From: Octopus sinensis
Taxonomy: Eukaryota
NCBI RefSeq assembly: GCF_006345805.1
Contig: NC_043015.1
Span: 46,190,001-46,254,000, forward strand
Length of the DNA: 64,000 nucleotides
Direction: 5' to 3'
Of this stretch, positions 13,512 through 63,331 are shown one piece after another. The notes below the pieces were generated by a model. That model searched no databases and was not told the origin of the DNA. It saw only the letters and a program-made list of their open reading frames with translations. How positions within the stretch are numbered: position 1 is the stretch's first letter; every line of letters starts with the position of its first letter. The position numbers were made by a program, and so were the translations under genes.

Positions 13512-13639
13512 TACATACATGGTGGCTGCCCCCTCGTTATCGAGTATGGCCATTGCACGAAGCTTAATCAATGTTGTTATCGTGCAATGCCTGTGCAAGA
13601 ATTTTTTTAAAGTGAGGAAAGGCTGTGCACTGAGTCAAT

Positions 13640-14090
13640 CATACATGCATGCATGCATACATACATGCATACAAACATATATACATACGTGCATGTATGC
13701 ATACATACATACATACATACATGCATGCATACATACATACATGCATATAAACATACATACATACAAACGTACATACATACCTACGAACGTACATACATAC
13801 ATACATGCATGCATACATACATGCATACAAACATACATACATACATAACATACATACATACATGCATACAAACATACATTCATACATACATGCATACAAA
13901 CATGCATACATACATACATGCATACATACATACATACAAACATATATACATACGTACATACATGCATACAAACATACATACATACAAACATGCATGCGTA
14001 CATGTATACATACATACATGCATACATAGATACATGCATGCATACATACAAACATACATACAAACATGCATACATGCATCCATACATACA
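13640..14090. repeat. (CATA)n/(CATG) compound microsatellite
   Basis: Seen directly; accounts for several spurious ORFs. Confidence 0.97.
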
Positions 14091-14909
14091 GACAGACAGA
14101 CAGGTAGTGTGCGTTTGTCTCCCACCACTTAACGATGTTGGTTTGTTGATGTCCCCGTATGCTAGTGAATGAGCAAAAAGAGTGGCCAGTATACAGTTTG
14201 AGACCCGTTAACGAAAATGAAAATAACACCCAGTCTACAAAGTTTGAAAAAAATGTGTAAGAAACGATTATCTAAAAAAAAAAAATTGAGCAAACGGAAG
14301 GACTTTCGGAAAATTCACACGATCCGATTTCTTCCCTCATAATTTCCAGGAAAAATATTTTTCCACACAGATTTCTTAATACTCATAATCTACGCCTTTT
14401 GAAAGAGGTTTCTGTAAAATTTCATCAAAAGATATTCATTTTCCTGAGGGATAAAAACGGATCATGTGAATTTTTTTTCTCTTTCCTATTAATTTTCTAC
14501 ACATTTTTTTACACCTGGTAGGCTGGTTTTTTTGGTTTTTTTTTTTTCGTTAACGAGTCTCAAACTGTATATTGACCAAAAGAGTTGGAGAGAATAAGTA
14601 CAAGATTTTAATAAACGAATAAACAATGAAATGGGTTGATTTATTCGATTAATCTCTTCAAAGCGGGGTCCCAGCATTTCCTCAGTTCAACAACGAAAAC
14701 GGTAAAGAGAAAAAGTTTACTAGTATGAGTTATCGCCCTTCCACTGATAACCTACAAAACTATCGCAATTCGGCGACGAAATTCTGTATCGCTTTGACAT
14801 TTACTTCGAGTTACATCCATTTCAACCTCCTCCTCCTCCTCATCATCATCATCCTAGTCAGGTGTCGCACTATGCGATGCTGTGGTCATCACGATGTCTC
14901 GCCACCTTC

Positions 14910-25696: not shown

Positions 25697-26540
25697 CTAG
25701 CAGAATTGCCCGGCGTTGCTCGGGGCTGAATTGCTTGAAAGTACTGTTAATGATTGCACTGAATTATGATGATTATTCAGGCAAATATTGATATAAGTTT
25801 ACGGTGGGAGATAAGGACTTAACAATCAAACGTGTGCCATTGCATTGTTTTGGGGGAACCAAATTTCTGATGAGCATTATAGGAGCACCAACTTTAAGTT
25901 TGAGAAAGTGTGGTGGTAGTCCGGGGTGCTCAAAGGAATTGAGTACCTCTATTGGATAGTTGATGACGTCCTCTGGGTCAGGAGTTGTATCGATAGACTG
26001 ATATACATAGACTTCCCCAGGAATGAGTTTTAGCATTTCATCATTAATATGGTGAACAGTTTTATTCCTCGGGGCCAGTATAGCCTTTTTGCCAATCCAA
26101 TCCATATTCTGATAATTAGCTTGTAGATCTGGGAACACTGCATCTCTGAGATCAGAAGGCGTCTTAACAATGGTACAAATGGAATCGATGGCAATATTAC
26201 CATTTTCATCCCCTGGTATTTTGCCTTCGCCAAGTGCAAGGAGGGTGTGAGGAAATGCTGCTGATGTGATATTACGTCGCATATGAGCACGCATATTGGT
26301 GTGAAGTTTGAGAGTTACTTCCGTTTATTTTTAAAATATGCATTAAAATGGAAAAAAATGATGGTAAATTATTTGTAAAATCATAGACTCATCGTAGACG
26401 CGCGCTAATACCCAGAAGGGCTCGATATGAATCACGACTATAAGATACCCGGTTTTGGTTAAACTGCATCGCAAAATGTGGGAGTAGTTAGGAATCTAAA
26501 TCGGAGTAGACAGACACACAACCTTTCTTTTATATATAAA
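25697..26540 (-). mobile_element. Helitron family-A termini enclosing a PIF1 helicase fragment
   Basis: Family A 5' body, ORF 25773-26294, hairpin plus CTAG at 25697. Confidence 0.88.
25773..26294 (-). pseudogene. Helitron RepHel PIF1-helicase fragment (173 aa open)
   Basis: AILAPRN..V..IN, YQSID, YPIEVLNS..PGLPPH.LKLKVGAPIMLIRNL..CNGTRLIV. Confidence 0.9.
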
Positions 26541-30496: not shown

Positions 30497-31325
30497 TAGA
30501 TGCTTGCAGTGGCTTCCCAGACGCCAGTTGAACCGTCCAACCCATGCTAGCATGGAAAGCGGACGCTAAACGATGATGATGATGATTCACAGAAAACCGA
30601 GAAATCCTAAATTTCACTCCTAAGCTATTAGTTTAGTTCTGAGTGGATACACGAGTTTACCAAATCCACTCACAAGACCCTGGTCCGCCTGAGACCACGT
30701 GTGTGTGTCTTTGTCCCCTTGATATGTCTCCATGTTACTTAACAACTGGTGTTTGTTTGTTTATGTCCCCCATAGCTTTGTCGTTCAGCAAAAGATACCA
30801 AAAGGCCAATTACAAGATTTAAGAACAATATTGATACTTATAGGCGTAGGAGTGGCTGTGTGGTAAGTAGCTTGCTTACGAACCACATAGTTCCGGCTTC
30901 AGTCCCACTGCGTGGCACCTAGGGCAAGTGTCTTCTACAATAGCCTCAGACCGACCAAAGCCTTGTGAGTGGATTTGGTAGACGGAAACTGAAAGAAGCC
31001 CGTCCTATATATGTATATATATATGCATTTGTGTGTCTGCGTTTGTCCCCCTAGCATTGCTTGACAACCGATGCTGGTGGGTTTATGTCCCCGTAACTTA
31101 GCAGTTCGGCAAAAGAGACCGATAGAATAAGTACTAGGCTTCCAAAGAATAAGTCCTGGGGTCGATCTGCTCGACTTAAGGCGGTGCTCCAGCATGGCCA
31201 CAGTCAAATGACTGAAACAAGTAAAAGAGTAAAGAGTTATCGTAATCCAGGGTGAATAGGGGCAATAGTTTCTCCTGGTGACTGTCCCTATTTACCCTGG
31301 ATTACGGTAGTTGTTCAAGTAAATC

Positions 31326-31392
31326 CTACAAGGCAGGTGTATCATCTTGTTCTTTATCTTCAGCAGTTTTAGACCGAATATGTTTTAAACAC
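31326..31392 (-). CDS. Terminal exon of hidden gene: (L)CLKHIRSKTAEDKEQDDTPAL*
   Basis: Long polypyrimidine tract ending ttcattttag, stop TAG at 31328-31326. Confidence 0.75.
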
Positions 31393-34300
31393 CTAAAATG
31401 AAGAAAAAAAATCAAAAATAGAAATAAAAATATTTTATTACTTCTACGTTTAACAAAAAAAAACAAAAAAAACATTTTCATTTTCAAAATTAAAAAAGTT
31501 AGAAATTTTAAATATATTGGCACAGGACATGGCTGTGTGGAAAGAATGTTGCTTTCCAGCCATATGGTTCCATTCCAAGTTCAATCCCACCGTGTAACAT
31601 TTTGGGCAAATGTCTTCTGCTATAGCCTCAGGCTGACCAAAGACTTGTGAGTGGATTTGGTAGACAGAAACTGAAAGAAGCCTGTAGCGTGTGTCTTTTA
31701 CTCTTTTACTTGTTTCAGTCAGTTGACTGCGGCCATGCTGGAGCACCGCCTTTAGTCGAGCAACTCGACCCCGGGACTTATTCTTTGTAAGCCCAGTACT
31801 TATTCTATCTGTCTCTTTTGCCGAACCGCTAAGTGACAGGGATATAAACACACCAGCATCGGTTGTCAAGCAATGCTAGGGGGACAAATACAGACACACA
31901 CACGCATATATATATATATATACATATATACAACGGGCTTCTTTCAGTTTCCATCTACCAAATCCACTTGCCCAAGGTGCCACGCAGTGGGACTGAACCC
32001 GGAACCATGTGGTTGGTAAACTAGCGACTTACCACACAGCCACTATTGGACAAGATATAAGCATCTTGTCTAATAATATATCAGATCATCATCATCATCG
32101 TTTAGCGTCCGCTTTCCATGCTAGCATGGGTTGGACGGTTCGACCGGGGTCTGGGAAACCAGAAGTCTGCACCAGGCCCAGTCTGATCTGGCAATGTTTG
32201 TACAGCTGGATGCCCTTCCTAACGTCAACCACTCCGTGAGTGTAGTGGGTGCTTTTTACATGCCAGACGAGGCTGGCAAACGGCCACGATGGGATGGTGC
32301 TTTTTACGTCCAACCCATGCTAGCATGGAAAGCGGACGCTTTACGATGATGATGATGATGATCCGATATATTATTAGACAAGATACTTATATCTTGTCCA
32401 ATAGTGGCTGTGTGGTAAGTACTTGTTTACCAACCACATGGTTCCGGGTTCAGTCCCACTGCGTGGCACCTTTAGCAAGTGTCTTCTACTATAGCCACGG
32501 GCCGACCAAAGCCTTGTGAGTGGATTTGGTAGACGGAAACTGAAAGAAGCCCATCGTATATATGTATATACATATATGCGTGTGTGTGTTTGTGTGTCTG
32601 TATTTGTCCCCCTAGCATTGCTTGACAACCGATGCTGGTGTGTTTACGTCCCCGTCACTTAGCGGTTCGGCAAAAGAGACCGATAGAATTAGTACTGGGC
32701 TTACAAAAGAATAAGTCCCGACGTCGAGTTGCTCGACTAAAGGCGGTGCTCCAGCATGGCCGCAGTCAAATGACTGAAACAAGTAAAAGAGTAAAGAGTA
32801 TATAATATATGAAAGACCAATCTCACCTCAGTGTAATTTCAAACTAAAACATAACAATCCAAAACAAATGATGCAGGGCAGTTTGTCTGACATTCTAATG
32901 ATTCTACCAATTTGTCAAGACATCGATTGGGGGTGGGAGCTGGCATATTGTTGATGAAGCTCTCGTGATGGCAGTGATAGTCTTTGCTTTTGATATTCTT
33001 TTTTTTTTTGATATAGGCCCTGCCCATTCAAAGTACCTTGGATTTCAGAACACCCGCTGTGCTTGAGGAGACCTATTGAGTCAAGTACATGAACATCGAA
33101 ATAAATATAAGTGGAAATAGTAGTTGTGATACCTGTGCCGGTGGCACGTAAAAAGCACCATCCGAACGTGGTTGATGCCAGCTCCGCCTTGACTGGCTTC
33201 TGTGTCGGTGGCACATAAAAAGCACCAACCAAACGTGGCCGATGCCAGCGCCGACTTGACTGGCTTCTGTGTCGGTGGCACATAAAAAGCACCAACCGAT
33301 CGTGGCCGCTGCCAGACTCCTCTGGCACGTAAAAAGCACCCACTACACTCGCGGAGTCGTTGGTGTTAGGAAGGGCATCGAGCTGTAGAAACACTGCCAG
33401 ATCAGACTGGAGCCTGGTGCAGCCTCCTGGCTTCCCAGACCCCGGTCGAACCGTCCAACCCGTGCTAGCATGGAGAACGGACGTTAAACGATGATGATGA
33501 TGATAGGAAAGAAGAAAAAAAAATTACTTACAAGCCAAAGACCATTGGAATACTGAGTTGGGTTATATCTTTCGGTACTTAATAGTTATGGTATGTTTTT
33601 TTTCATTTAGCTGTCATAAAAGAAAAATAATTATTATGACTACATTTGTGAGAAGATTAATTAGTCAGAAAGAAAATAAACAGAAACGTTTAATAAGGCG
33701 CAGGAGTGGCTGTGTGGTAAGTAGCTTGCTTACAAACCACATGGTTCCGGGTTCAGTCCCACTGCGTGGCATCTTGGGCAAGTGTCTTCTACTATAACCT
33801 CGGGCTGACCAAAGCCTTGTGAGTGGATTTGGTAGACGGAAACTGAAAAAAGCCCGTCCTGTATATGTATATATATATATGCGTGTGTGTGTTTCTGTGT
33901 CTGTGTTTGTCCCCCTAGCATTGCTTGACAACCGATGCTGGTGTGTTTGCGTCCCCATTACTTAGCGGTTTGGCAAAAGAGACCGATAGAATAAGTACTG
34001 GGCTTACAAAAGAATAAGTCCCAGGGTCGAGTCGCTCGATTAATGGCGGTGCTCCAGCATGGCCGCAGTCAAATGACTGAAACAAGTAAAAGAGTAAAGA
34101 GTTAATCCCGAGCAAAGCCGGGTTATACTGGTAGTACATACATATATTTATATGTGTGTGTGTTTGTGTGTATATATATATATCTATATCTATATATATA
34201 AACAGCAAAATGTCTGCCTGTGTGTGTGTGTATCCTTTATACAAATCCACAATTTTTCAGTTAGAGGGCTCGCACTTTCTATGGTCATTCAAAACCGTCC

Positions 34301-34574
34301 AAGGGTGGTCGTGCACATCTTTACATTTCCCAGTCACCCCGCAAAGCCATTAAAAAAATCAATAGAAGTGAATTTTTTGTGAATTTTCTATCCAAAACCC
34401 AATCAAAATGCCCGAAACTTGATACACCAATTGAATGCCAGCTGGCTGTATGTGATTAGTTGGAGATTTGGACAGTACCCGCGTGTACATGCGCATGCAC
34501 GCAGCTGTATATGCATGCGCTAGCACTATGATCCTGTGTTGCCGGGTCATAGTGCTAGTATATATATACATATA

Positions 34575-34608
<34 letters not shown>

Positions 34609-37600
34609 CTAGAACTATGACCCATTCAAAATGTGATCGTGTGTGTACCATTGGCAATTTTTTTTCTTTGTCTTCCCATCTCTGGACCTAACCTTCTCCT
34701 ATGTTTCCGACGAAGAGCTCCGCTCGAAACGTTAAACCCTCCTTCTTTCCTGAGCGTCCAATAATACTATATTTGTTCCACGTCCTCCCGTTGTGTTTTT
34801 TGTGCTTTCTTGTTTGGATTAACTATATATATATATATGTATATATATGTTTGTGTATGTGTGTGTATATATATATACACACACATATATATGTGTGTGT
34901 ATATATAAATTTTCCATTTACCAACTCCACTCACAAGTCTTAGTCTACAGAGCTTGGGATAAGTAGAAGATATTTGCTCAAGTTGCCGATGCCACGCAGT
35001 GGGACTGAACCAGCAGCCAAATAGTTGTTGAGCAAGTTTCTTAACTACACAGCCATGCATGACTACAATGTAAAAATAATAAGAATACTTACTGTTGGTA
35101 TCGCTTCATAACCTTGTGCAAGATGTCTACCCAAGTCAAGTCGGTAATATTTCACCTCTCCACCAATTTCAATTTTACCAATGAGATCATTGCTGTAAAA
35201 TGAATTATGAATCTGACAAACACTAGAATCATATACATCATCATCGTTTTAATGCCTACTTTTTCCTTACTAACCTGAGATTTATTGAGGCAGGTCCTTC
35301 TACAACTGAACGCTCTTCCTGTCATTAACCTTCATTGGTTTCTGAATATTATTTTCATTTTCTCACTCAAAAACTGCACATATTTCAGCAACAAATAATA
35401 TAAACAATGACTCCGCTTAATACAAGGACATTGCTTTTCACACAGTGTGCAAACAATATCAAGACACCCCCGTCACTTAGCGGTTCGGCAAAAGAGACCG
35501 ATAGAATAAGTACTGGGCTTACAAAAAAAGAATAAGTTCTGGGATTCGAGTTGCTCGACTAAAGGCGGTGCTCCAGCATGGCCGCAGTCAAATGACTGAA
35601 ACAAGTAAAAGAGTAAAGGATGCAAAAGGATGTTGTATTGCAATCCTGTTTAACTCATACCAATAATGGAAGAAAAAAAATCAGCCAAAATTTTAACCCT
35701 TTAGTGTTCACATTATTCTGCCAAAATTACTCTTTCTCCCTTTTACTCTCTTTTACTTGTTTCAGTCATTTGACTGCGGCCATGCTGGAGCACAGCCTTT
35801 AATCGAGCAACTCGACCCCGGGACTTATTCTTTTTGTAAGCCCAGTACTTATTCTATCGGTCTCTTTTTGCCGAACCGCTAAGTGACGGGGACGTAAACA
35901 CACCAGCATCGGTTGTCAAGCAATGCTAGGGGGACAAACACAGACATACAAACACACATACATACATATATATATACATATATACGACAGGCTTCTTTCA
36001 GTTTCCATCTACCAAATCCACTCACAAGGCATTGGTCGGCCCGGGGCTATAGCAGAAGACACTTGCCCAAGATGCCACGCAGTGGGACTGAACCCAGAAC
36101 CATGTGGTTGGTTAGCAAGCTTCTTACCACACAGCCACTCCTGCGCCTTTAATCGGAAATTAATGCTTTTTCATCCACATTGTTTTGAACTAATCAGGCA
36201 TTTTCTTGTAGCTATGAGATTTTGATGAGGTAGCTGTTAATTTTTCAAATGATATTGTAGGGTTGGTGTGAGAGACCAGATCTGGCCATTTTGAACATAA
36301 AACAGGTAGAATACTTTTGGCCGGATATGGCCGGTTTAAATGCTAAAGGGTTAAACCAATGATGCAGATGATGATTGTGATGATGATGATGATAGTGAGG
36401 ATTGTGACAAAGATGGTGATTAATAGAAATTAAATATTTCACCTACCCTTCTATGTATGCATCGGGATCTGAACCAGTTTTCATATCTGACCATTTTACA
36501 GTCTGCTTGGATGGGAAGGTACCAGTTACTGAAATGGTTAATAATAAAAATAAAATGAAAAGAAAGACAGAAAAAATTGCTTTGACAAACTGACTAAAGT
36601 TTAAGTAAATAAAGCAGGCTTGTGTTGCCATAGCTGTTAAAAAAGTTTGTTCACAGTTATGTACTTTTGGGTCAATCACAAAGCATGGTACCTTGGGCAA
36701 GTCTCTTCTACTATAGTCTTGTTAGTGGATTTAGTAGATGGATGCAGAAAGTAGCCTATCATATGTGTCTGTGCATATATGTATATATATATATCTATGG
36801 GTGTATGTGTTTGTATTTGTCCACCACCATTGCTTGAAATAAGAAAAAGATGATAATGGTAAATTAGACAAAAAAGAAAAGACAAAAATAAGCAAAGAGG
36901 GAAGAGAGACAGCAATTAACAAAGAAGGAGTGGCTGTGTGGTAAGTAGCTTGTTTACCAACCACATGGTTCCGGGTTCAGTCTCACTGCGTGGCACCTTG
37001 GACAAGTGTCTTCTACTATAGCCTCGGGCCGACCAAAGCCTTGTGAGTGGATTCGGTAGACGGAAACTGAAAGAAGCCCGTCGTATATATGTATATATAT
37101 ATGTGTGTGTGTGTGTTTGTGTTCGTCCCCCTAGCATTGCTTGACAACCGATGCTGGTATGTTTATGTCCCCGTTACTTAGCGGTTCGGCAAAAGAGACC
37201 GATAGAATTAGTACTGGGCTTACAAAAGAATAAGTCCCGGGGTCGAGTTGCTCGATTAAAGGCCGTGCTCCAGCATGGCCGCAGTCAAATGACTGAAACA
37301 AGTAAAAGAGAGAGAAGGTAAAGAGGAAAAGCAAGGCAAAAGGAAAGGAAGAAAGGAAGAAAGCAAGCTGGAAGGAATCAAAAAAGCAAACACGCGAAAT
37401 AGGGAAAGATGTATATATTTAAGAGTTACCATCATCAAATGAATAATAGACACGGCCAGCCATCACGCAGATCTTTTAATGAACTGTTGGAGGAAAAAAA
37501 AAATACAATATAAGACAATAAGCACAAAAAAGAAGACAACACAGGAGGGAGAAGTTTTGAGAAATGTATTTGTTTAAAAAAGGGATAGACATGATTCTAA

Positions 37601-37998
37601 CTCAGTGGTTCTCAAGCGAGCAGGCCAACAGAAGAAAGAGTGAGAGAAAATTATGGCGAAAGTGTACAGCAGGGATCGCCACCACCCCCTGCTGGAGACT
37701 CGTGGAGCTTTAAGTGTTTTCCCTCAATAAACACTCACAACGCCCGGTCTGGGAATCGAAACCGCAATCCTAGGACCGCGAGTCCGCTGCCCTAACCACT
37801 GGGCCATTGTGCCTCCACCTGATATATATATATAAATTAAATTAGAGATAAAACCACCATTAGGCAAAACAATATATATATTTCTTTACAACCCACAAGG
37901 GGCTAAACATAGAGGGGACAAACAAGGACAAAGGGATTAAATCGATTACATTGACCCAGTGCTAACGTTTCTGCCAGCTCGCCGCCATATATATATAT

Positions 37999-38035
<37 letters not shown>

Positions 38036-38345
38036 CTTGGGTGTGTTTCTACGTAAATATATATACGTGTGTGTGTCTATATATATATATATAAAAAAAT
38101 AAATGCGGCCTTTTTAAAGCCTAGCCAGACTCATGGGCCCGGTTACCCAGTTTCTATGGTGAATGTGTTCCCCAGCTGGACGGGACGCCAGTCCATCGCA
38201 GCGTTACTCATATTTGCCAGCTGAGTGGACTGGAGCAACGTGAAATGAAGTGTTTTGCTTGAGCAAACACAACGTGTCGCCCGGTCCAGGAAGCAAAACC
38301 ACAATCTTACAATCATGATGCTGACACCCTAACCACTAAGCCTAT

Positions 38346-38392
<47 letters not shown>

Positions 38393-40227
38393 GTGTGTGT
38401 GTGTGTGTGTGTATTCCTCATTTATATACTTTTTCATTCCTACAAAACTGCATTGTCCCTAACCTAGATTGATTATTTAAATTCCACTATTATTTCTCTT
38501 TTCTCTGTTAATACTTTATCTAATAAGAATACACCTAATAATAATAATAATTGATTCCACTGAATCCATATACATATGCATGCATGCATGCATCCGTCGT
38601 CGTTTAACGTCCGTTTTCCATGCTAGCATGGGTTGGACGGTTCGACCAGGATCTGGGAAGCCAGAAGGCTGCACCAGGCTCTAGTCTGATCTGGCAGTGT
38701 TTCTACAGCAGCATGCCCTTCCTAAAGCCAACCACTCCGTGAGTGTAGTGGGTGCTTTTTAAGTGCCAGGCGAGGCTAGCAACGGCCACAATCGGATTGT
38801 AAACGGAACCCTTCCTCACTTTAAACAAACATCCTCAACAAATGTCTTTCAGAGGATGTTTGATTCCGGTTATATCGAAATTAAGGTGGGGAAAAAAATT
38901 TTAAATGATGGGCAGGCATTATACATACTGGCAGGTATTGCAATATTTTACAAAATGGATCTTTTCGGTTTGAACGGCAGCTTTTTAAAATAATTTCCAC
39001 ATAACTAAACACTTTAAAAATTCGTATACTGGTAGAATGTGTTTATAAAACATCTTTTTCTCTAGGCTTTATTGAGAAAATTCTATAGTTTGTAAGATAT
39101 TTGTTCTTTTTTTTTCTTCAATTTCTGCAATTTCAACCAATCAATGACGTCTATTGAGGTGAAAACATTCTGTGCCGTATGAATATGTCCCTCGTTTAAG
39201 AAACAGATTGGGTTTATTTACATTGCTGAAGAAAAAAAGATACCCTCCACCCCCTAACCCTAAAACAGATTGAAATGCAATAGATCGATACTAGTGTCAT
39301 AATTATGGGTGACAATTTCATATGACACCGCTAGAAAAAACTGCCGTTCAAACCGAAAAGATCCTACAAAATTTCAAGTCTTATTCTGTAGTTTCATTTG
39401 AGATGTATCTCTATGTATGTTTGTGCCCCACTTTTTTTCCCCCCATTAAATTCCGATATAATTGTAACTTTAAAAAAAAATATCCATTTTACTGAAAGTT
39501 ATGAAGAAACAAATTCGAGGGCGATCTTTCGTCTCTAGTAGACCTTTCCGTCGATTTCCGTAAAAAAATGTTTTTTTAAACATGGGCTTGCGGGAACTTT
39601 TGAAGTAATATACATACATATACACATACACCGAGTAAAAAATTTCAGTTATCTCTCTCTTTCACACATTACTCTGTCTCTTCACACACGCTAACAGAAG
39701 CACTTCACTTACACACACATACTGTCTGTCTCCCACACCCCATCAACACACCACACACACACACATGTACATCAATGCTTCCCCTGGATGGTAACTTCAA
39801 AAGAACTTCCCCTCGTCATAAAATCGCTTTCTCTTAGTCTCTTTCGCTCTCATTACTTCAAAAGGTTCCCGCAAGCCCATATGTAAAAAAAAAATTTTTT
39901 TTACGGAAATCGACGGAAAGGTCTACTAGAGACGAAAGATCGCCTATATAATATATATATATATATATATATAATATATATAATATATATATACACACAA
40001 ACATGTATGCGCGAATCTTTCATTTGCATACGCGCAAGTCGTTGAAATTAATTAATAAAATATATAAAATTCCAAAATTAAATATTTAAATTAAAGTTAA
40101 AATTAATAATTTAAACTTATAATATTTAAATATAATATATATATTTTTATTTATTTATTTATTTTGGATTTACTCCCTAATATTATTATTATATATATAT
40201 ATATATAGATGTGTGTGTGTGTGTGTG

Positions 40228-40262
<35 letters not shown>

Positions 40263-40264
40263 AT

Positions 40265-40329
<65 letters not shown>

Positions 40330-40359
40330 TATATATATATATATATATATATAATATAT

Positions 40360-40390
<31 letters not shown>

Positions 40391-41433
40391 ATATATTTAG
40401 AGGGAAACCCTGTGTGGACACCCATATGCTAGAAATAGATCCGCTACGGTCTCACCACGAAGAAATGTTCTCAAGAAAAATTAGCAAAACAACCAAAAAC
40501 GAATCGAGCAAGACAAAGAAAAGTAATAAAAATGTGGATTATAAATATATATATATATACATAATATATATAATATATATAATATATATATACATATATA
40601 TATAAATATATATATATATATTATATACATATATATATAATATATATATTATTATATATATATATATGCATATATAATTTGGTGTGTATGTGGTAGACAC
40701 TATAATATACAATTCTCTCTCTATCTCTCACTCCTGCTGTTCATAAATCTCTTTAACTTTGATTGTTATATTTATTATTCATTCCTATTTCCAGGGTTGG
40801 AGGTTCCACCTTCGGTTTTTAAACTTCTTAGAGATTTAAAATTCACAAATTCAAGATTTTCGAAATAATTTCATATCCCACGGAGAAATGGCTAAATCAG
40901 TCGAAGACACTCATTAATATTTAATGTTATGCTTTGCTGTTGTTTTTACTTTTAAATCTTTTGGATTCGAGGGAGAAGAGTTTCGGATAATTCACACAAC
41001 TCGAATTGGCGATCGCCGTACTCAAATACCCGGGGTAGGGTAATATGCTTTATTTAAAAGCAGCAGAAAATCCAACAAAACCTGTTACTCGGAGTTTCAC
41101 GTTCCCCGTTCGTCGGACAGTTTTGTTAAAATAGAACCGATATGACAATTCTATCAAGACTAGAATAAACGTTACACCTTTAAAAATGGACTTGTATATA
41201 TATATATATATATATATATAATTTGGTAAACAACAAAATGTTCAGATAACTGTCTTAAACATTTAGACAAGCAAATACATATTTCAAATGTGTGACACGA
41301 GGCATTATTCCCTACAAATATCCATGTATTTATATATTAAGGGTTAGATCAGGGCTTTTCGACCTTTTTGCAGGACCGGAACCCCAAGAAAACATTTCAC
41401 TGGCTCGAGGAACCCCTGTGCAATAATTTTATA

Positions 41434-41470
<37 letters not shown>

Positions 41471-41784
41471 ATAAATAATAAGGGTGAAATTAGAATTTGG
41501 AATAATCATTAATTTCACCAAGTAGATTTCGGCATGTAAAAGCCCCATTCAAGGAAGGTTTAAGTAATACAAATTCGGTGTGTGGTGAGGCAAATCGTTG
41601 CTAAACCCTTAATTACTTAGTATATATATATATATATATATATTATAGAAGGAGCTTCTACAGGACTAGAACTGTTTCATTCAAATGAAATCATCAAGCT
41701 CCTTCTATAAAATAACTTAATTTACTCTGCCATGTATTGAGTACCTTATTTACTGTGGTTTAAACCCCGACTCAACCCGGGACC

Positions 41785-41828
<44 letters not shown>

Positions 41829-41968
41829 GTGTGTGTGTGTATGTATGTATACATAAAAAGCGCAACAAATTATACGATTGAAAACCTTTGCGTAGCCGTG
41901 TTTTTAGTAGAAATAAAAGAAAGAAGTGGATAATAGACTTTACCTTCTGTCTTTTTCGGATTTCTCAT
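31326..41968 (-). CDS. Five-exon gene for an unrecognised ~117-aa protein (MRNPKKTEVTGTFPSKQTVKWSDMKTG...DDTPAL); one apparent 1-bp frameshift in exon 4
   Basis: Exons 41944-41968, 36447-36528, 35093-35192, 33532-33610 and 31326-31392 have canonical GT-AG sites. Phases join in frame for exons 1-4; joining exon 4 to 5 needs +1 nt. Confidence 0.75.
33532..33610 (-). CDS. Exon 4 of hidden gene: LNEKKHTITIK then VPKDITQLSIPMVFG in a shifted frame
   Basis: Acceptor tttttcttttatgacag, donor CTT|gtaagt, 79 bp; 80 bp would keep the frame. Confidence 0.75.
34189..34558 (+). mobile_element. Non-autonomous Helitron, family B
   Basis: TC-TATATATAAAC start; long 3' hairpin ending in CTAG. Confidence 0.8.
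34703..34737 (+). ncRNA. Minimal type I hammerhead-like motif (Penelope style)
   Basis: gttt-CCGACGA-A-gagc tcc gctc-GAAA-cgtt-aaac; palindromic ACGT stem III. Confidence 0.6.
35093..35192 (-). CDS. Exon 3 of hidden gene: NDLIGKIEIGGEVKYYRLDLGRHLAQGYEAIPT
   Basis: Acceptor aattcattttacag, donor ACA|gtaagt, 100 bp, open in the frame set by exon 2. Confidence 0.85.
35699..36351. mobile_element. piggyBac-type MITE, family 2, interrupted by a SINE
   Basis: Same termini; SINE A at 35740-36148 lies inside. Confidence 0.72.
36447..36528 (-). CDS. Exon 2 of hidden gene: VTGTFPSKQTVKWSDMKTGSDPDAYIEG
   Basis: Acceptor ttattaaccatttcag, donor AGG|gtaggt, 82 bp. Confidence 0.8.
38957..39364. mobile_element. 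Merlin-like MITE, family 1
   Basis: Perfect terminal TIRs; perfect 8-bp TSD tacaaaat. Confidence 0.85.
39520..39944. mobile_element. Merlin-like MITE, family 2
   Basis: ~50-bp TIR GGCGATCTTTCGTCTCTAGTAGACC..; interior shared with 27029-27460; no TSD visible. Confidence 0.72.
39945..40680. repeat. (TA)n-rich tracts; similar at 24760-24905, 43255-43385, 43705-43885, 45870-46220, 59705-59855, 63260-63465, 63805-64000
   Basis: Seen directly. Confidence 0.95.
41074..41127 (-). ncRNA. Type I hammerhead ribozyme-like motif (CCGACGA core)
   Basis: Stem I aacaaaactgt/acag-g-ttttgtt; stem II acg/cgt; GAAA; stem III act/agt; triplet GUA. Confidence 0.7.
41944..41968 (-). CDS. Exon 1 (coding part) of hidden gene: MRNPKKTE+G
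   Basis: ATG at 41968, donor AAG|gtaaag, phase 1 matches exon 2, CpG-containing flank. Confidence 0.65.
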
Positions 41969-42200
41969 GAAGACTGTCTATTCAAAAACAACGACCAAGT
42001 GGAAGCGGCCACCGACTGCCTAATTAACGCTGTGTGCTGAGGCGGGGGGGGGGGGGGGTAGATGAACGAGCTGAAGGAGAAGAGAAAGGACCAATCGATG
42101 GATGCTTTGTAAGTGGTGGTGGTCTGTGAGAGATGCTAAGAGCAGGCGCGAGGCGATTGTGAAACGAGAGTAAAGCAACAAATGAATATGAAATTAAACA
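41969..42200 (-). promoter_or_regulatory. Putative 5' UTR/promoter of hidden gene
   Basis: Locally GC/CpG-rich unique sequence with a long G/C run, upstream of the ATG. Confidence 0.45.
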
Positions 42201-45160: not shown

Positions 45161-45680
45161 TCGGATAGTGCTTTTTACGTACCACCAGACCAGGATCTGG
45201 CTGGTTCAATTCGATTTCGATTTCGCTTGCCCCAACATGTCTTCACAAGCAAAGGGGGTTGGCAAGGGTGCCTGTCGTACGGTCGCATTGGAGTATTTTA
45301 CGTGCCACGGCCACGAGTCGGATAGTGCTTTTTACGTACCACCAGACCAGGGATCCTGGCTGGTTCATTCGATTTCGATTTCGCTTGCCCCAACATGTCT
45401 TCACAAGCAAAGGGGGTTGGCAAGGGTGCCTGTCGTACGGTCGCATTGGAGTATTTTACGTGCCACGCCACGAGTCGGATAGTGCTTTTTACGTACCACC
45501 AGACCAGGGATCCTGGCTGGTTCATTCGATTCGATTTCGCTTCCCCAACATGTCTTCACAACAAAGGGGGTTGGCAAGGGTGCCTGTCGTACGGTCGCAT
45601 TGAGTATTTTACGTGCCACGGCCCCGAGTCGGATAGTGCTTTTTACGTACCACCAGGCCAGGGATCCTGGCTGGTTCAAT
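45161..45680. repeat. ~157-bp tandem repeat (about 3.3 units) within an RTE UTR
   Basis: tcggatag recurs at 45161, 45318, 45475 and 45629. Confidence 0.9.
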
Positions 45681-45695
45681 TCATATATATATATA

Positions 45696-45740
<45 letters not shown>

Positions 45741-46115
45741 ATATATATATATGTGGCCTGCTCGCTTAGCCAGCGGGGTGGCATCATTCGAAGGCTAAAA
45801 CAATGCGAACGCATTGTGACCAGCGATGTGTAGCAACATCTGATGGTCTGGTTGGTCACGTGATCACGTGATATATATATATATGTATTGTATGTATATA
45901 TATATATGTATATGTATATATATATATGTATATGTATATATATATATGTATATGTATATATATATATGTATATATATATGTATATGTGTGTATATATATA
46001 TATGTATATGTGTATATATATATATGTATATGTTATATATATATATGTATATGTGTATATATATATATATATTATATATATATATATGTAATGTATATAT
46101 ATATACATACATATA

Positions 46116-46164
<49 letters not shown>

Positions 46165-46417
46165 TACATACATCATACATACATACATACATATACATAC
46201 ATACATACATACACATACATACATACATACATACATACAGAGGTGTAAATCCATTACGACCGTTTCTAACAACTCTTTAATTGATTAATGAAAACATTAC
46301 ATCATTGGAAACAAACAAATAACAATAATAATAATAATAATAATAATGAAATTATTGTATACAGTGCTCAGTGCACCACAAACAGACTGTTTTCATCAGG
46401 TGAATTCATGAACTTCA

Positions 46418-53204: not shown

Positions 53205-53684
53205 TTGGAACACTTTCCACTGCATCTGTTGCATATGCTTGTATCCGATGAATATAAAAGTATCCTTAGTTGCTTTGTAAAAGAGGATGTTTTAGCTGTA
53301 TCTAAATTATCAGATATTGATCTTAATAACACAACAAATCACAAAGATATGGGTGATATTTACCTTGGTGGATGCGCAATGAGATATCTAGAACAAAACC
53401 CCATCATTGGTGACTCGGCTAGATTAAAAACTGATTGCAAACATTTTTTAATAGAATTATACTCTCAAATAAAAATGTGCTTTCCTCTCAATGAAACTGG
53501 AGTGTTTGCCCTCTTAGAAATACTTGATCCAAAAGTAGTGCATGACTTCACTAACTCTCCTCAGTCGATAATTCTCTTGGCATCAGACTTTCCAGCAATT
53601 CCACCACAAAACGCACTTGATGAACCAGATGATGAGTGGAGATTATTTCAGCAATATAAAGATATTCCTCGTAAAGTATACTAG
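53205..53684 (+). pseudogene. hAT-type transposase C-terminal fragment
   Basis: IYLG..C..FLIELYSQI..FP..LEILDP..LASDFP..DDEWR pattern; no N-terminus or TIRs. Confidence 0.7.
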
Positions 53685-54900: not shown

Positions 54901-55121
54901 CCAAAATTCTGACTACCTTTGTGTGTGTATATATATATATATCATCATCATCATCATCATCATCGTTAAACGTCCGCTTTCCATGCTAGCATGGGTTGGA
55001 CAGTTCAACTGGGGTCTGGCAAGCCCGAAGGCTGCACCAGGCCAGTCAGATCTGGCAGTGTTTCTACAGCTGGATGCCCTTCCTAACGCCAACCACTCCG
55101 AGAGTGTAGTGGGTGATTTTA

Positions 55122-55500
55122 TGTGCCACCAACACAGGTGCCAGACGAGGCTGGCAGACGGCCACGCTCGGATGGTGTTTTTTATGTGCCACCGACACAG
55201 GTGCCAGACGAGGCTGGCAGACAGCCACACTCGGATGGTGTTTTTTATGTGCCACCGACACAGGTGCCAGACGAGGCTGGCAGACAGCCACGCTCGGATG
55301 GTGTTTTTTATGTGCCACCGACACAGGTGCCAGACGAGGCTGGCAGATGGCCACGCTCGGATGGTGTTTTTTATGTGCCACCGACACAGGTGCCAGACGA
55401 GGCTGGCAGACGGCCATGCTCGGATGGTGTTTTCTTATGTGTCACCGACACAGGCGCCAGACGAGGCTGGCGAATGGCCACGCTCGGATGGTGTTTGTTA
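55122..55500. repeat. 63-bp tandem repeat (about 6 units) within an RTE UTR
   Basis: Translates as repeating PPTQVPDEAGRxPxSDGVFYV. Confidence 0.9.
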
Positions 55501-56059
55501 CGTGCCCTCAGCACGGAGGCCAGTCGATGCGGTACTGGCTACGGTCACGTTTGGATGGTTTTCTTATGTGCCACCGGCACTGGTACCACAAGGATACAAA
55601 TTCCATTGATGTTCATCTATTTTGGTTTGATTTGATTTGATTTGATTTGATATATATATATATATATATACACACACATTCATTCATATGTGTGTAGCCA
55701 GTCAAACTAAACCTTTATCGTCAGTAGTACTATGTCATGGTCATGTTGGCCGAATAGGTATTAATTATTATTAGTTTCCCATTGGTTAAAGTTACTGCCC
55801 ATATTTGAATTCTAAATCTTTCATGAAATACAGTTCTTACAATTCAGATATGAGCAGTTATAAAAACCCTGATTTTTATTTTAAAAAATTAGTGTTCGTT
55901 GGTTTTCACTCGATTCCACAACACTCACTCTCTTGAAATATTGGCTATTGCCATGCCATATCTTTTGCCATATTCTTGTTTCTGCAGTGAACTTAGGTTC
56001 TCTGGATAGATTTCCTTTTTTTCTTTTGGTGATGCTGGTGGAGGTCTTTTCCGCCACAT

Positions 56060-56760: not shown

Positions 56761-57779
56761 TTTCAGTGTACTGGTTCTGACTTCCGGCGGGATCAGCTTT
56801 AGACTGGATCCTTCCTTCTGAATCAGCCTGTTAGACTTTTCAGTTTTTTCTGCTCAATTTTGACCTCTCATACCTTGGTTCATCTTGATTATCTCACTCC
56901 CATTTCTTAATATATAATTAACCTAAGATATTTTTACCTAACTAATTAACTTTTATCCGCAGGTAGTAAATTTTATTTCCTATAGATCCTATATTTTAAT
57001 TCATTAATATCAACTCACTATCCATGAAATTTGAATAATTTACTCTTCTAAATTACCTCTCTTCATATTATAAAATATCGCATTCTACTAAAACCTATGA
57101 ATATCTTCCTTCTTTGATTTTCCCTCTTCCATCTTTCTTAGTATATATTTTGACCCCCAATATGTTCACTTGATTAATAAGGCTTTTTCCCCCAGTTAAT
57201 GAGTACTATTTTGACCTCTCATACCTCTGTGCGTCTGTAGTTGTACCCTTTCCAGCCACTGAAGCATAACTCCTGGCCTGTTCTGGAACTGGTTCACAAT
57301 CCATTTTCTCCATTTTTTTCCCTGCTTCACCCCAAAACAGGGACGAAGACAAACGCAAAAATCACAAGCTTGCAGGTAAAATTAGTAACAGTATTTAACA
57401 AATTCAACAGTTCAAATCATAGGTTCACCCTCATATGAGACCCTCCAACAAGTATACTACAAAGCACAATAAAACTCATGTCAACTGGAATAAAAAAAAA
57501 TTAAACACCAAAAAAAAAAAAACTTTGCCGGACCCATCCTACTGACTGTCAGACCACTATATATTAGTAGTGGACCAGGCCACTTCCCACATGGGGGCAT
57601 CTGCAACATGTTGCCAAGCAATTTTTACGATAGGATTTCTTATCTAAATTTTTGTTTATTCCATGCCACCCATGCCTTCCCCAACAAAAAACTTCTAAAG
57701 TAAGTGAAAAATTAACAAATTCGGGTGGAGTTAAATTCGTATTGGGGTGGGTTTAAATTTAGACTGCCAGCTTTTCTTT

Positions 57780-57972
57780 TCTTCTTTTTTTTTTTACAGA
57801 TATGGAATCTCCGCACTCGATAACCCACAACATGGGCGGTTTATTGTAATTACTTCTGCCTTGGTTCGTCCAATCACTACTCTCCTTACGTAGCACAGAG
57901 GCCATTAGGCATTCCGTGGTCGCTTGATCTTGGTCGTTGCTTTGAACAGTCTCCACGTGAAGAACCCTCCAA
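57780..57972 (+). promoter_or_regulatory. Putative promoter/first exon homologous to the hidden gene's leader, in inverted orientation
   Basis: attaggcattccgtggtcgcttgatcttggtcgttgctttgaacagtct resembles the reverse complement of 41969-42030. Also GGGCGG, CCAAT, CACGTG and a possible donor aa|gtaaat at 57973. Confidence 0.45.
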
Positions 57973-58157
57973 GTAAATTCTGCTCGAAAAAACTAAAGGT
58001 AACGTGTATTATCACTTCTTTCTGTTATTTCTACAAAAAAAAAAAAACACAGCTGCATAAACATTTTGAGTCGTGTTGTTTGTTACTAGATACGAGTAAG
58101 TTGTACAAATACATGCATATAATCATGTGTGTACGTATACATACATATATACATACA

Positions 58158-58204
<47 letters not shown>

Positions 58205-58862
58205 ACATTTATATTATATTGAGGGTACTACTATTCGTAGATACCAACACGCTAAGAGGGACCAATGCGGTCAAAACTACTAAAAATAAACAAAATGGCG
58301 GGCTCATTCGCAATGCATTTCGAGAAAAAATCCAGCGTGCCATTTTCATAGATATATAAAGATAAACATTCGGACATGCTACGACGAATTCTACGGTTGG
58401 CTATCGAGCTTGTAATGTTATGTTTTTCTATTATATTTCTTGAGTTTGTTGCCTGATGAACATAGAAATGCATATTCTGCATTTAAATGCGAAATCACAT
58501 GTGGTATGTAACTGAATTCTTTTTAAAATGATGTGTTTTGAAGTTTTGCATTCGGTTAAAATTTTGTTTATTTTTAGTAGTTTTGACCGCATTGGTCCCT
58601 CTTAGCGTGTTGGTATCTACGAATAGTAGTACCCTCAATATAATATAAATGAATATTTTCAAAGAGGAAGAATTTACGGATTTTTTCTCTTACGAGGTTT
58701 TTCACGCTGACTACTGATAATTTCTTTTAAAGATTTTATCCTCAATTGTTAACATATATATGTATATATATGTATCAAAAGAAAAACAGGACACAAAGGA
58801 TTTTGTGGTATTATATCCTATCACCTATACAGGTGCTTACATTTATCAGGTATTCACCCTGA

Positions 58863-58911
<49 letters not shown>

Positions 58912-59713
58912 CGAAATCCTCGAGTATAATCCGCAAGAAGAAAATGGAGGGGATCAAGAGGTGGTATTCAACTTTTAGATATTATATTATGTCTGTTTAT
59001 TATTTTAAAAAAAAATTATAATATACATACATGTATAACAGATTGTTTTACATATATAAAAAATACCAGTATATAACGTAGAACGTAGAGAGTAGAATAG
59101 TTTCTTACAACCGTTTCAACCAAGAGGTCACAGTACCCTACTTCCATTCCTTCAGTGAACTGAAGTATTTGGTAGATAAAATTAAGGTACTTGGGTGTGC
59201 CTGGGCTTCGTCAGAGAGTTCAGAAAGTTCATAAGGTTAAGTTATAAATATAAATAATACATAAACATAAATACATATCTATATATACTGTAAATCCTCG
59301 AGTATAATTCGCATTTCCCCCCCAAAATTGAAAGGTCAAAATCACTAGTGCGTACTATATACGAGGTTGAAAAGGAAAAATATTTTCTAAACAATGTCCG
59401 GGTCTCTGTTTGCTGTCTGGCAATGTTTATTCAGACATGTTTTGTGATGTCGGGCGTGAAAATACCTTAAGCTAAGCCTGAAAGCAATGAAGTCATAAAA
59501 TATACATCCATAACTTGCAGTAAGCAACATTTATTAAAATAAAAGTATTCAGAAGACAGAATAACATATAACAAAACAATTTGCAAACATATTTACATTC
59601 CCGTATGTAAATTAAGAACATCACTATTATTGTATTATGCATACGCGGAAGTATATATATGTATATATATATAGATGAGTGTATTTTTACCTTGTTAACA
59701 ATTAACATATATA

Positions 59714-59748
<35 letters not shown>

Positions 59749-59855
59749 GTGTGTATGTATATATATGTGTATATATATGTGTATATATATGTGTATATAT
59801 ATGTATATATATGTATATATATATGTATATATATGTATATATATATGTATATGTA

Positions 59856-62800
59856 TCATCATCATCATCATCATCATCATTTAGCGTCCGTTTTCCATGC
59901 TAGCATGGGTTGGACGGTTCTACTGGGGTCTGTGAAGCCAGAAGGCTTCATCAGGCCCAGTCAAATCTGGCAGTGTTTCTACGGCTGGATGCCCTTCCTA
60001 ACGCCAACCACTCCGTGAGTGTAGTGGGTGCTTTTTACGTGCCACCCGCACTGGTGCCAGACAGAGCTGGCAACGGCCACGAACGGATGGTGCTTTTTAT
60101 GTGCCACCGGCACGAGGGCCAGGCGAGGCTGGCAACGGACACGAAACGGGGCGGTGCTGGCAACGGTCGCGAAACGGAAAGTTCTCTTACATGCCACCGG
60201 CACTGGTAACACATCTGCAATTTCCATTGATCGATTTCCATTGATCGATTTCGATTCTGATCCTCACTTGCCTCAATGGGTCTTCACAAGCAGAGTTTCG
60301 ACATGCCACCGGCACTGGTAGCACATCCGCAATTTCCATTGATCGATTTCGATTCTGATCCTCACTTGCCTCAACACGTCTTTACAAGTAGAGTTTTGTG
60401 TCCCAAGAAGGGAAGGTATGCATACGTAGGCTGGCTCCATCCCATGTAGAAGGCCACGGGTTGTGGACTCACTTGTCCTGCCGGGTCTTCTCGCGCACAG
60501 CACACTTCCAGAGGTCTCGGTCTCTAGTCATTTCCTCAGTGAGACCTAAAGTTCGAAGGTCGTGCTTCACCACCTCGTCCCAGGTTTTCCTGGGTCTGCC
60601 TCTTCCACAGGTTCCCTCAACCGCTAGGGTGTGGCACTTTTTCACACAACTATCTTCATCCATTCTCGCCACATGACCATACCAGCGCAAACGTCTCTCT
60701 TGCACACCAACTGATGCTTCTTAGGTCCAGCTTTTCTCTCAAGGTACTTACACTCTGCCGAGTGTGAGTACCGGCATTACACATCCATTGGAGCATACTG
60801 GCTTCATTTCTAGCGAGCTTACGCATATCCTCAGCAGTCACGGCCCATGTTTCACTGCCATGTAGCATGGCTGTTCGTACACACGCATCATACAGTCTGC
60901 CTTTCACTCTGTGCGAGAGGCCTTTTGTCACCAGCAGAGGTAAGAGCTCTCTGAACTTTGCCCAAGCTATTCTTACTCTAGCAGTTACACTTTCAGCACA
61001 CCCGCCCCCGCTGCTGACTTGGTCACCTAGGTAACGGAAACCATCAACTATTTCTAGTTTTTCTCCCTGGAAAGTGACGGAAGTTGGTCTCAGAGCATTT
61101 TCAGTGTTTATTGTTCCTGAGCATCTGCCACATACAAAACCATCTTCCTAGTTAGCCTTCCTTTGACATTGCTGCATCTCTTATGTGTCCATAGCTTACA
61201 CTTGGTGCATCTTATAGAGTTTCTACCTACACCTTTTCTACAGATCGAGCAGGCCATCTACTACTGAAGGTGTTTGTGATTTGTCTACCTTCCTACTGAT
61301 TACGACTTTGGTTTTAGCTAGATTGACTCTGAGGCCCTTCGATTCTAATCCTTGTTTCCACACCTGAAACTTCTCCTCCAGTTCTGATAGCGACTCAGCA
61401 ATTAGAGCAAGGTCATCAGCATAGAGGAGCTCCCAAGGGCATCCTGTCTTGAATTCCTCCGTTATTGCCTGGAGGACTATGATAAATAGGAGGGGGCTGA
61501 GTACTGAGCCTTGGTGGACCCCTACCTCTACCCAGAATTCTTCACTGTACTCATTTCCAACCCTCACCCTACTAGCGGCGTCCCTATACATGGCCCGCAC
61601 AGCTCTCACTAACCATTCATCTATCCCTAGTTTTCTCATTGCCCACCAGATAAGGGATCGGGGGACCCTGTCGAAGGCTTTCTCCATGTCAACAAAAGCC
61701 AGGTACAGGGGCTTATCTTTGGCTTGGTATTTCTCCTGCAGCTGCCTTACCAGGAATATAGCATCAGTAGTACTTTTCCCTGGCACAAACCCAAACTGCA
61801 TCTCATCTAAACTAACTCTCTCTCTAATTTGTTGGGCTATGACCCTCTCCGTAACCTTCATCACCTGGTCCAACAGCTTGATACCTCTGTAGTTATTTGT
61901 ATCTAGGGCATCACCTTTACCTTTGTAGCAGTTGACTATTATACTGCTACACCAGTCATTGGGTATGACCCCTTTGTGTATCACCTGATTAACTATATGG
62001 GTGACTAGGCTATAGCCGACACTACCAGACATTTTGAGCATCTCTGCAGTGATTCCTGATGGGCCTGGGGCTTTCCCTGTCTTCATGCTTCTAATTGCCT
62101 TAGCTACCACAGAACTATCAACTCGGATAGCTGGTCCCTCTGTTGGGTCAACATTCGGCAGACTCTCTTTATCCCATTCATTTTCTTCATTCAGCACCTT
62201 CATAGTGGCATCTCCAAACCTCTCTCTTTGCATCCTCATTTAGCGCAAGTGAACCATCTTCCATGCGAACACACTTCTCTCCTACCACATCACGATTCTC
62301 TCTCACACACTGTCTTGCAACACGAAACACCTCCAGTCTTTGGTCCTCACGGCGCAGAACATTGGCAAATTTTTTCTTATCTGCTCCCCTCTGGCTAAAT
62401 AAACCTGTCTCCTAGCTTCTCTTTTGGCAGTCTGATACAATTCCCTGCTACCCCCATTTTTCCAGACCTTCCAAGCCTGTCTCTTTCTCTAATAGCCCTG
62501 TCTACAATATTGTTCCACCACCACGTTATTCTAGGTCGAGAGGGGACTTTGCACCAGCCACAGATCTGGTCAGTGGCTCTCAGCAGGTTGTCCCTTAGAA
62601 ACGTCCAGCTGTCTTCTACCCCCTGTGATGCTCTATCCCTTCTACTTCATCAGAGGCTTCAAGTAATATGTCCCTAAATCTCTGTCCATTTGCAGGATCT
62701 TTAAGCTTCCAGATCCTTCTTCTCCATATTTGTCGTCTTCTGGTTGTCCTCCTAGTCCTGATCCTAAAGTCACTAACTACCAGTCTATGTTGTGGGGTAC

Positions 62801-63260
62801 ATTCTTCACCTGGGAAGGTTTTGGCATTTATAAGCAGCCATCTCTCCCTTTGCCTTGTAAGGATGTAGTCAATTTGGCTGGTATGTTGGCCCGATTGGTA
62901 AGTGACTAGGTGGCTGGTAGGTTTCCTGAAGTTAGTGTTGCAAATCATAAGATTATTTGCATCGCAGAACTCCAGCAGCCTGGTTCCCTCCTCGTTGCGG
63001 GAGCCATAGCCATAGCCTCCATGTACGCCATGGAAGCCCCCAGCATGTCGTCCAACGTGACCATTGAAGTCACCAGCCATAAAGATAAGGTCTCTGTCGT
63101 TCGTCAATGAGGTAGTCTGCAATAGAGTGTCATAGAATCGGTCTTTCTGTCCATCGGGTAGCCCCGACTGAGGAGCATAGGCTGATATAATGGTTGCTAA
63201 ACTATGATGAAGCACTAATCTAATCTTAAGTATTCTGTCACTTACTCTGATTACCTCAAT
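59856..63260 (-). mobile_element. RTE-superfamily LINE, 5'-truncated, with APE endonuclease, RT, C-terminus, long 3' UTR and (GAT)n tail
   Basis: EN motifs [21 protein letters not shown] and PQHRLVV; RT motif LYADDLAL; sequence is continuous into the repeat-containing UTR and tail. Confidence 0.95.
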
Positions 63261-63280
63261 GTATATGTATATATATGTAT

Positions 63281-63331
<51 letters not shown>

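Follow-up and report, generated by a model that had tools for sequence, protein, structure and literature searches.

A 64,000-nucleotide stretch of the Octopus sinensis genome (CM016877.1 of assembly GCA_006345805.1, approximately 46190001-46254000; G+C 39%, with abundant interspersed repeats), hereafter the window, carries on its minus strand a spliced gene for a small protein, which we call gene A. Sequence comparisons suggest that gene A probably does encode a protein, is confined to the Octopus lineage and is orthologous to the gene encoding CAI9736933 and CAI9736934 in Octopus vulgaris. By the same comparisons it is one of three clustered paralogs in a LOC115222236-like family, in which exons 1-3 have diverged faster than introns, a pattern that points to selection on the encoded protein. 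The family is already in databases as hypothetical proteins and the window copy is an unannotated ortholog.

Two isoforms are deposited for O. vulgaris gene A (locus L004), namely CAI9736933.1 (P0008, 104 amino acids (aa)) and CAI9736934.1 (P0001, 79 aa). Paralog B is represented by LOC115222236 in O. sinensis (XP_029648254.1, P0003, 112 aa) and CAI9736932 in O. vulgaris (P0002, 138 aa), and paralog C by CAI9736931 of O. vulgaris (P0004).

Exon structure of gene A

An initial annotation of the window had proposed that five exons of 25-100 bp make up a hidden gene whose small product was not recognised. The gene itself was borne out: all of the peptide pieces lie on the minus strand where they had been placed, with AG/GT borders throughout. 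Exons 2, 3 and 5 match exons of annotated Octopus homologues exactly, whereas exons 1 and 4 proved wrong.

In the corrected model, exon 1 spans 37430-37483; its coding part (37430-37463, ATG 37463-37461) encodes MAGRVYYSFDD plus 1 nt and ends at the donor G/GTAACT (here and below, slashes within sequences mark exon borders). Its acceptor, a polypyrimidine tract with CAG at 37484-37500, lies 20 nt 5' of the ATG. The MAGRVYYSFDD exon is an exact tblastn match to the N-termini of P0001, P0008 and P0004, has the 34 nt and the phase of exon 1 in the ortholog and paralogs, and belongs to a block 94.7% identical to paralog B. The coding start had previously been set at an ATG at 41968, which is not conserved in paralog B and which stands in an altered phase in O. 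vulgaris.

The 25 nt formerly taken as exon 1 (41944-41968) are the last nucleotides of a minus-strand block at 41944-42024, its 5' end undefined, that is a candidate non-coding leader exon ('exon 0'); on the simplest reading it is probably spliced to exon 1. The block sits in an island of ~240 bp paralogous to window positions 57904-58203 on the plus strand, upstream of paralog B. The leader donor AAG/GTAA is kept in four of four copies, and the block contains no conserved open reading frame (ORF): the ATG of gene A is ACG in paralog B, alongside a 19-20-nt indel, and in O. vulgaris gene A a 1-nt deletion (24 vs 25 nt) shifts the phase such that an ORF would meet TAA at the start of exon 2. 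Two other interpretations were rejected. The block is not part of an inverted repeat or miniature inverted-repeat transposable element, as its flanks hold only AT/GT microsatellites, and the likeness of its read-through GKVYYP to MAGRVYYSFDD was judged to be chance, the block being paralogous instead to the region upstream of B.

Exon 2 (36447-36528, minus strand, 82 nt) encodes (V)TGTFPSKQTVKWSDMKTGSDPDAYIEG and exon 3 (35093-35192, minus strand, 100 nt) encodes NDLIGKIEIGGEVKYYRLDLGRHLAQGYEAIPT, which holds the invariant KYYRLDL core. Homologous exons of 34, 82 (79 in paralog C) and 100 nt, with the same borders and phases, were found across L001-L004.

For exon 4, previously drawn at 33532-33610, the acceptor was correct, but an internal donor (33579/33578) closes the exon 47 nt short of the former end. 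This short form (33579-33610, 32 nt) encodes LNEKKHTITI(K), ends at the donor AA/GTACCG and keeps the C-terminal tail in frame; the similarity of exon 4 to paralog B stops at 33580. The extension of the long form (33532-33578) runs to the strong donor GCTT/GTAAGT and contains an in-frame TAA (33563-33565), and the longer exon as first drawn reads, unedited, LNEKKHTITIKYRKI before a stop inside exon 4. A G had been inserted after ATTAAG as a correction; this extra base is absent from the window, from the O. vulgaris ortholog and from the paralogs. The 117-aa protein built in this way has a wrong N-terminus and a 16-residue insert, VPKDITQLSIPMVFGL, that exists only through the inserted G. Judged from the genomic sequence, these residues correspond to intron or to the tail of a stop-containing long exon-4 form.

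The coding part of exon 5 (31326-31392, minus strand; TAG stop 31326-31328) reads (K)CLKHIRSKTAEDKEQDDTPAL and then the stop after short exon 4, or VFKTYSV and a stop if exon 4 is skipped. With short exon 4 splicing, the unedited window sequence is an open frame of 104 codons. The 11.7-kDa product is MAGRVYYSFDDVTGTFPSKQTVKWSDMKTGSDPDAYIEGNDLIGKIEIGGEVKYYRLDLGRHLAQGYEAIPTLNEKKHTITIKCLKHIRSKTAEDKEQDDTPAL, with HLAQGYEAIPTLNEK as the exon 3/4 junction peptide and HTITIK/CLK at the exon 4/5 junction. Skipping of exon 4 gives a 79-aa product ending in VFKTYSV, as in P0001, and the long exon 4 gives a product stopped within the exon. For annotation, this means that the correct model requires a 32-nt micro-exon with a weak donor and that the apparent frameshift is a mis-set exon border, not a sequencing error.

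The gene is indeed buried in repeats, as first described: 55% of 31000-42100 has further copies within the window, in which all exons of gene A are single-copy. The introns hold an interspersed repeat of ~400 bp with 15 copies in the window, ~8 of them within gene A (representative copy 33696-34101, strand unassigned; others at 30842-31236, 31697-32044, 32403-32798, 35748-36148 and 36926-37310, plus fragments). ARAGORN detected no tRNA-like head of a short interspersed nuclear element in this repeat.

Relatives in two Octopus species

The 104-aa product is 93% identical to CAI9736933 over 104 aa, with seven amino-acid differences, and L004 aligns at ~95% across gene A, with the same internal exon-4 donor and the same exon 5. 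P0008 reads AIPT/LNVKKHTITIK/CLKHIRSKTAEDKEQDDIPAL, which was reproduced only with a 32-nt exon 4 (L004:15431-15462) ending in ATTAA/GTACGA; the window donor ATTAA/GTACCG matches the position of this internal donor. The long segment of O. vulgaris exon 4 differs from the window by a 2-nt indel and four substitutions. Both genes have five coding exons with the same phases, internal exon-4 donor and exon-5 frame, and both lie beside paralog B. They differ in that the O. sinensis copy comes closer to paralog B at four nucleotides of exon 2, and in that the O. vulgaris proteins are deposited whereas O. sinensis gene A has no deposited protein. In the O. vulgaris annotation, alternative forms entered only where PASA updated the models with RNA-seq and Iso-Seq data (PMC10700109); the two isoforms at O. 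vulgaris gene A therefore imply transcript support in that species. In O. vulgaris, gene A is followed 6.6 kb downstream by an unnamed gene model of 87 aa (L004 24559-27474), with its window equivalent at ~21.8-24.7 kb on the minus strand.

Gene A resembles the family at E-values of 2e-30 to 9e-21 in the protein search and 1e-34 to 1e-49 in the profile search. Paralog B is on the plus strand, head-to-head with gene A and ~30 kb away. Window positions 57526-64000 are identical (100%) to positions 1-6475 of its locus (L001, CM016877.1:46247526-46275378), and its start codon falls at window-equivalent 67526, past the window end. Paralog C lies beyond B in O. vulgaris, where the accessions are consecutive (931 for paralog C, 932 for paralog B, 933/934 for gene A). 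A Glyco_transf_11 (fucosyltransferase-type) gene directly follows paralog C in that species (L003 31896-35519).

Paralogs B and C, which are 60-66% identical to gene A, share with it the exon 1-2-3 structure, the invariant core motifs, the acidic exon-5 tail and a homologous exon-4 cassette, in which the acceptor and the strong donor GTAAGT are conserved. The long exon 4 is stop-ended in the paralogs too (in P0002, LNKRNHTITLTYGSWCMLF and then a stop). The routes to the tail differ: paralog B, which has no internal GT donor in exon 4, gets there by skipping exon 4, whereas gene A requires the 32-nt exon 4 together with one inserted nucleotide, lacking in paralog B, where exon 5 begins. Since the 32-nt exon offsets this insertion, the tails CLKHIRSKTAEDKEQDD of gene A and VIKHIPFETAEDEEQD of paralog B keep the same frame. 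Paralog C is a mosaic, with exon 1 identical to A, exons 3 and 5 identical to B, and a unique exon 2 bearing an in-frame 3-nt deletion.

A search of 5.8 billion proteins returned three matches, all from Octopus (P0001, P0002 and P0003), and a profile search over all 1.84 billion cluster representatives added one further Octopus protein, P0004. The earlier suggestion of a lineage-restricted gene thus held, with protein homologues confined to O. vulgaris and O. sinensis in these searches. The protein was likewise unrecognised in that it had no Pfam or PDB sequence match; it is not wholly unrecognised, since its ortholog and paralogs had already been deposited as hypothetical proteins (CAI9736931-34, XP_029648254). 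Short fast-evolving proteins often seem lineage-restricted through homology detection failure (PMC7660931), so 'Octopus-only' here denotes no detectable relative and is not proof of de novo origin. No mention of LOC115222236 occurred in 8.3 million full texts or in the supplementary files of two papers on octopus transcriptomes.

No consistent Pfam match was obtained for the protein first proposed, the 104-aa protein or the paralogs; sub-threshold matches to NADH_B2, MoCoBD_1 and Rubredoxin_C were rejected because they vary from member to member. Sequence and profile searches of the PDB gave nothing below E = 0.3. The bacterial repeat proteins P0005 (Ig_7), P0006 (PPC) and P0007 (AIR9-type Ig) were also dismissed as homologues: they reach their E-values only when 5-20 repeats are added together, the top score of any one repeat is 4.7-13.6 bits, and the three align to different parts of the query.

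Divergence of exons and introns

Paralog exons are 3-13 times more divergent than the adjacent introns. Between A and B, exons 1-3 differ at 38 of 216 positions, vs 33 of 584 in the flanks of ±100 nt (p = 6e-7). Across the 1.26-kb block of exons 1 and 2, all paralog pairs show exon divergence of 10-14% and intron divergence of 0.8-3.5% (p = 5e-4 to 2e-8); for B vs C in O. vulgaris, the counts are 12/112 in exons vs 9/1141 in introns (p = 2e-8). The 25 differences between A and B in exon 3 fall in patches around the invariant KYYRLDL, with 60-90 nt on each side near-identical. Short exon 4 and exon 5 differ by 16-25% between A and B, amid introns that differ by 42-56% and are essentially unalignable.

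Both of two explanations fit the paralog pattern: gene conversion that homogenises introns, with converted exons purged by selection, or adaptive divergence of exons after conversion. Either requires selection on the encoded protein, and neutral decay does not account for the pattern.

The main alternative is that the locus is transcribed but its ORF has no protein function, as in a young proto-gene, a decaying duplicate or a long non-coding RNA, with the hypothetical proteins being by-products of TransDecoder/EVM and Gnomon. We regard this as unlikely, but a series of observations weighs in its favour or against the gene model preferred here. Between O. sinensis and O. vulgaris (window 31250-37620 compared with L004), gene A differs equally in exons (9/315, 2.86%) and introns (169/5999, 2.82%). 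The exon differences are seven nonsynonymous and two synonymous, a ratio of nonsynonymous to synonymous rates (dN/dS) of 0.97 with no sign of purifying selection at that time scale, and the ortholog pair is incompatible with strong constraint (P = 0.0007 for omega = 0.2). Among paralogs, dN/dS is 1.25-1.7, not significantly above 1, and synonymous sites also exceed the intron rate, so that adaptive substitution has an alternative in conversion tracts bypassing the exons. At short exon 4, the donor GTACCG is the weaker one when set beside the conserved GTAAGT downstream. Both the 104-aa and the 79-aa O. sinensis products are absent from a collection of 15 billion proteins, so gene A is not annotated as coding in this species; the gene models of the family have four different C-termini, and homologues occur only in two sister species. 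AlphaFold2 models built on shallow family alignments are beta-rich and of low confidence, with a predicted local distance difference test (pLDDT) score of 44.8 for B and 48.6 for the 104-aa product of A.

Paralog B of O. vulgaris adds a further point of this kind. A 1-nt deletion at its exon 1 donor (L002 24746-24779 vs L001 10001-10034; GATAGCG/GT to GATAGG/GT) reduces the exon to 33 nt, places TAA first in exon 2 and breaks the canonical frame; the deletion may be genuine and disabling, or else an error of the assembly. Owing to this broken exon, P0002 probably begins in an unrelated ORF 15 kb upstream (window 53235-53408). The corresponding window ORF (53205-53684, plus strand, 159 aa) has no Pfam match; over residues 11-68 it shares 98% identity with the first coding exon of P0002. 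A transposon remnant and a real exon are both candidates for this ORF.

Set against these points, neutral decay cannot produce exon divergence 3-13 times faster than that of neighbouring introns, nor can it keep short exon 4 and exon 5 alignable amid unalignable introns. The reading frame is intact in A of both species, in B of O. sinensis and in C, and five of six copies lack stops and frameshifts over 216-315 nt despite 11-25% divergence. The indel of paralog C is in frame, and splice sites are conserved in all copies. We continue to favour a protein-coding gene A. Were the ORF non-functional, the family would be a warning about the hypothetical proteins that octopus annotations contain.

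Separately, the introns of O. sinensis and O. vulgaris have diverged by 2.8% at gene A but by only 0.45% at paralog B (L001 9850-17900 vs L002) ~30 kb away, a six-fold local gap. The intergenic DNA between A and B is ~2-3% divergent between the species.

Fold, possible role and parallels with known systems

The 104-aa protein is acidic and hydrophilic (isoelectric point 5.9), with one Cys and no hydrophobic segment. A simple hydropathy check indicated no signal peptide in the family proteins (maximum Kyte-Doolittle value 0.85 in an 11-residue window), which have 0-1 Cys. Being hydrophilic, with no hydrophobic N-terminus and one Cys, the product is not a classical secreted peptide. Membership of a secreted toxin-like family was rejected: the family has the excess of exon over intron divergence, but neither a signal peptide nor a cysteine framework. 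Foldseek searches with the A and B models returned nothing at E ≤ 0.001.

The initial annotation had taken the beta-rich pattern ending in TITIKVPK as reminiscent of HSP20/CS-type folds. That string crosses the exon-4 artefact, the real sequence being TITIK/CLKH. The protein could be a highly diverged alpha-crystallin (HSP20) or CS-type beta-sandwich, serving as a small chaperone- or co-chaperone-like binding module. Its size and its 7-8 predicted strands fit, and the top Foldseek match of the 104-aa model was the alpha-crystallin domain of HspB1 (3q9q_A; E = 0.067, TM 0.42/0.53, 76 columns; also 3q9p), with the Shq1 CS domain ranked fifth (2mnw; E = 0.25, TM 0.34). We nevertheless consider this reading improbable. 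The match comes from a model of pLDDT 48.6 and disappears with the model of paralog B, which gives unrelated matches; small beta-sandwiches also easily match one another. Neither PF00011 nor PF04969 matched at E ≤ 10 in the protein first proposed, the 104-aa protein, P0008, P0003 or P0004, and there was no PDB sequence or profile match.

Least credible is the 117-aa model with its start at ATG 41968 and one G lost from exon 4 by the assembly, which we hold to be very improbable: although its five pieces have AG/GT borders and compatible phases, its corrected frame continues into exon 5 in register with the homologous tail of the paralog, and single-base indels are conceivable in the long-read O. 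sinensis assembly, ATTAAGTAC recurs without the added G in the O. vulgaris assembly, an independent one, which further on has a 2-nt indel that would break the frame, the paralogs align gap-free at the site of the proposed G, the 32-nt exon of the annotated P0008 restores the frame unedited, and the upstream start is undone by the loss of the ATG in B, the exon-0 phase of O. vulgaris A (24 vs 25 nt) and the conserved start exon at 37430-37463.

As to function, we tentatively propose a mechanism in which the protein would be a small, cytosolic, beta-rich binding module. Its invariant core (TVKWSDMKTGS..AYIEG..LIG.I.I.G..KYYRLDL.R.L.QG) would bear variable surface patches that track a fast-evolving partner, and splicing of exon 4 would determine if the product carries its last two strands and acidic tail. 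Within the cluster, gene conversion probably exchanges intron sequence among the paralogs, with exons 1-3 remaining, or being pushed, apart. The wider proposition, that A, B and C form a family born in Octopus (de novo or diverged beyond recognition) of intracellular beta-rich proteins, with exons 1-3 under diversifying selection, introns homogenised by conversion and an exon-4 switch, is possible but doubtful. If true, it would place the exon-accelerated mode of venom and recognition genes in a non-secreted protein, suggest a role in molecular conflict or recognition (e.g., antiviral or anti-transposon defence, or gamete interaction), and make exon-4 splicing a built-in switch of a C-terminal module.

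Elsewhere in the window, an uninterrupted ORF of 251 aa at 1995-2750 (plus strand) matches the CEP19-like protein family (PF14933, E = 1.4e-41, full-length domain) and has an acidic low-complexity C-terminal tail; a CEP19 gene without introns and a retrocopy are both possible. Transposon remnants are present at 6802-8341 (plus strand) and 61238-63503 (minus strand) as reverse-transcriptase ORFs (RVT_1), one of them beside an endonuclease-RT domain, and a Pif1 2B-domain fragment typical of Helitron-like elements lies at 25773-26294 (minus strand). Long micro- or minisatellite tracts at 13635-14229, 45401-46228, 55113-55640 and 62616-63503 give rise to long ORFs that are spurious. Among these tracts are TG/TA-rich repeats, which translate as (C/Y/M/V)n, and, at ~55.1-55.6 kb, a tandem array with a unit of 63 bp.

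Taxon-restricted genes are thought to underlie cephalopod novelties and, to our knowledge, very few such genes have any selection evidence. With three copies in two sister species, an exon-over-intron signal, mosaic conversion and a compensated frame change, A, B and C offer a tractable case for how a young small protein gains and diversifies function.

Known systems provide points of comparison. The hairpin of the bacterial PPC domain (PF04151) resembles the stretch G-x-I-x3-G-x3-YYRLDL-x-R of gene A, and hhalign against the PPC repeats of P0006 gave 81.6% probability over 29 columns, a post hoc pick among 1.84 billion proteins (22.9% against the AIR9 Ig). The resemblance extends to 29 of ~70 domain positions, the best single-repeat HMMER score is 12 bits and the PPC profile had no Pfam match at E ≤ 10. 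The other comparisons concern mode of evolution. Exons are accelerated and introns conserved in crotaline snake venom phospholipase A2 (PLA2) isozyme genes and in conotoxins; the red/green opsin genes of primates keep their exons distinct while gene conversion homogenises the introns. Unlike the venom PLA2s and conotoxins, the product of gene A has no signal peptide, one Cys and no sign of secretion, and the family has three copies only; unlike both patterns, exons 4 and 5 of A/B/C behave in the opposite way, as conserved islands. What A, B and C share with the venom and opsin genes is exon divergence 3-13 times that of introns, a dN/dS of about 1 or higher, and synonymous divergence above the intron rate.

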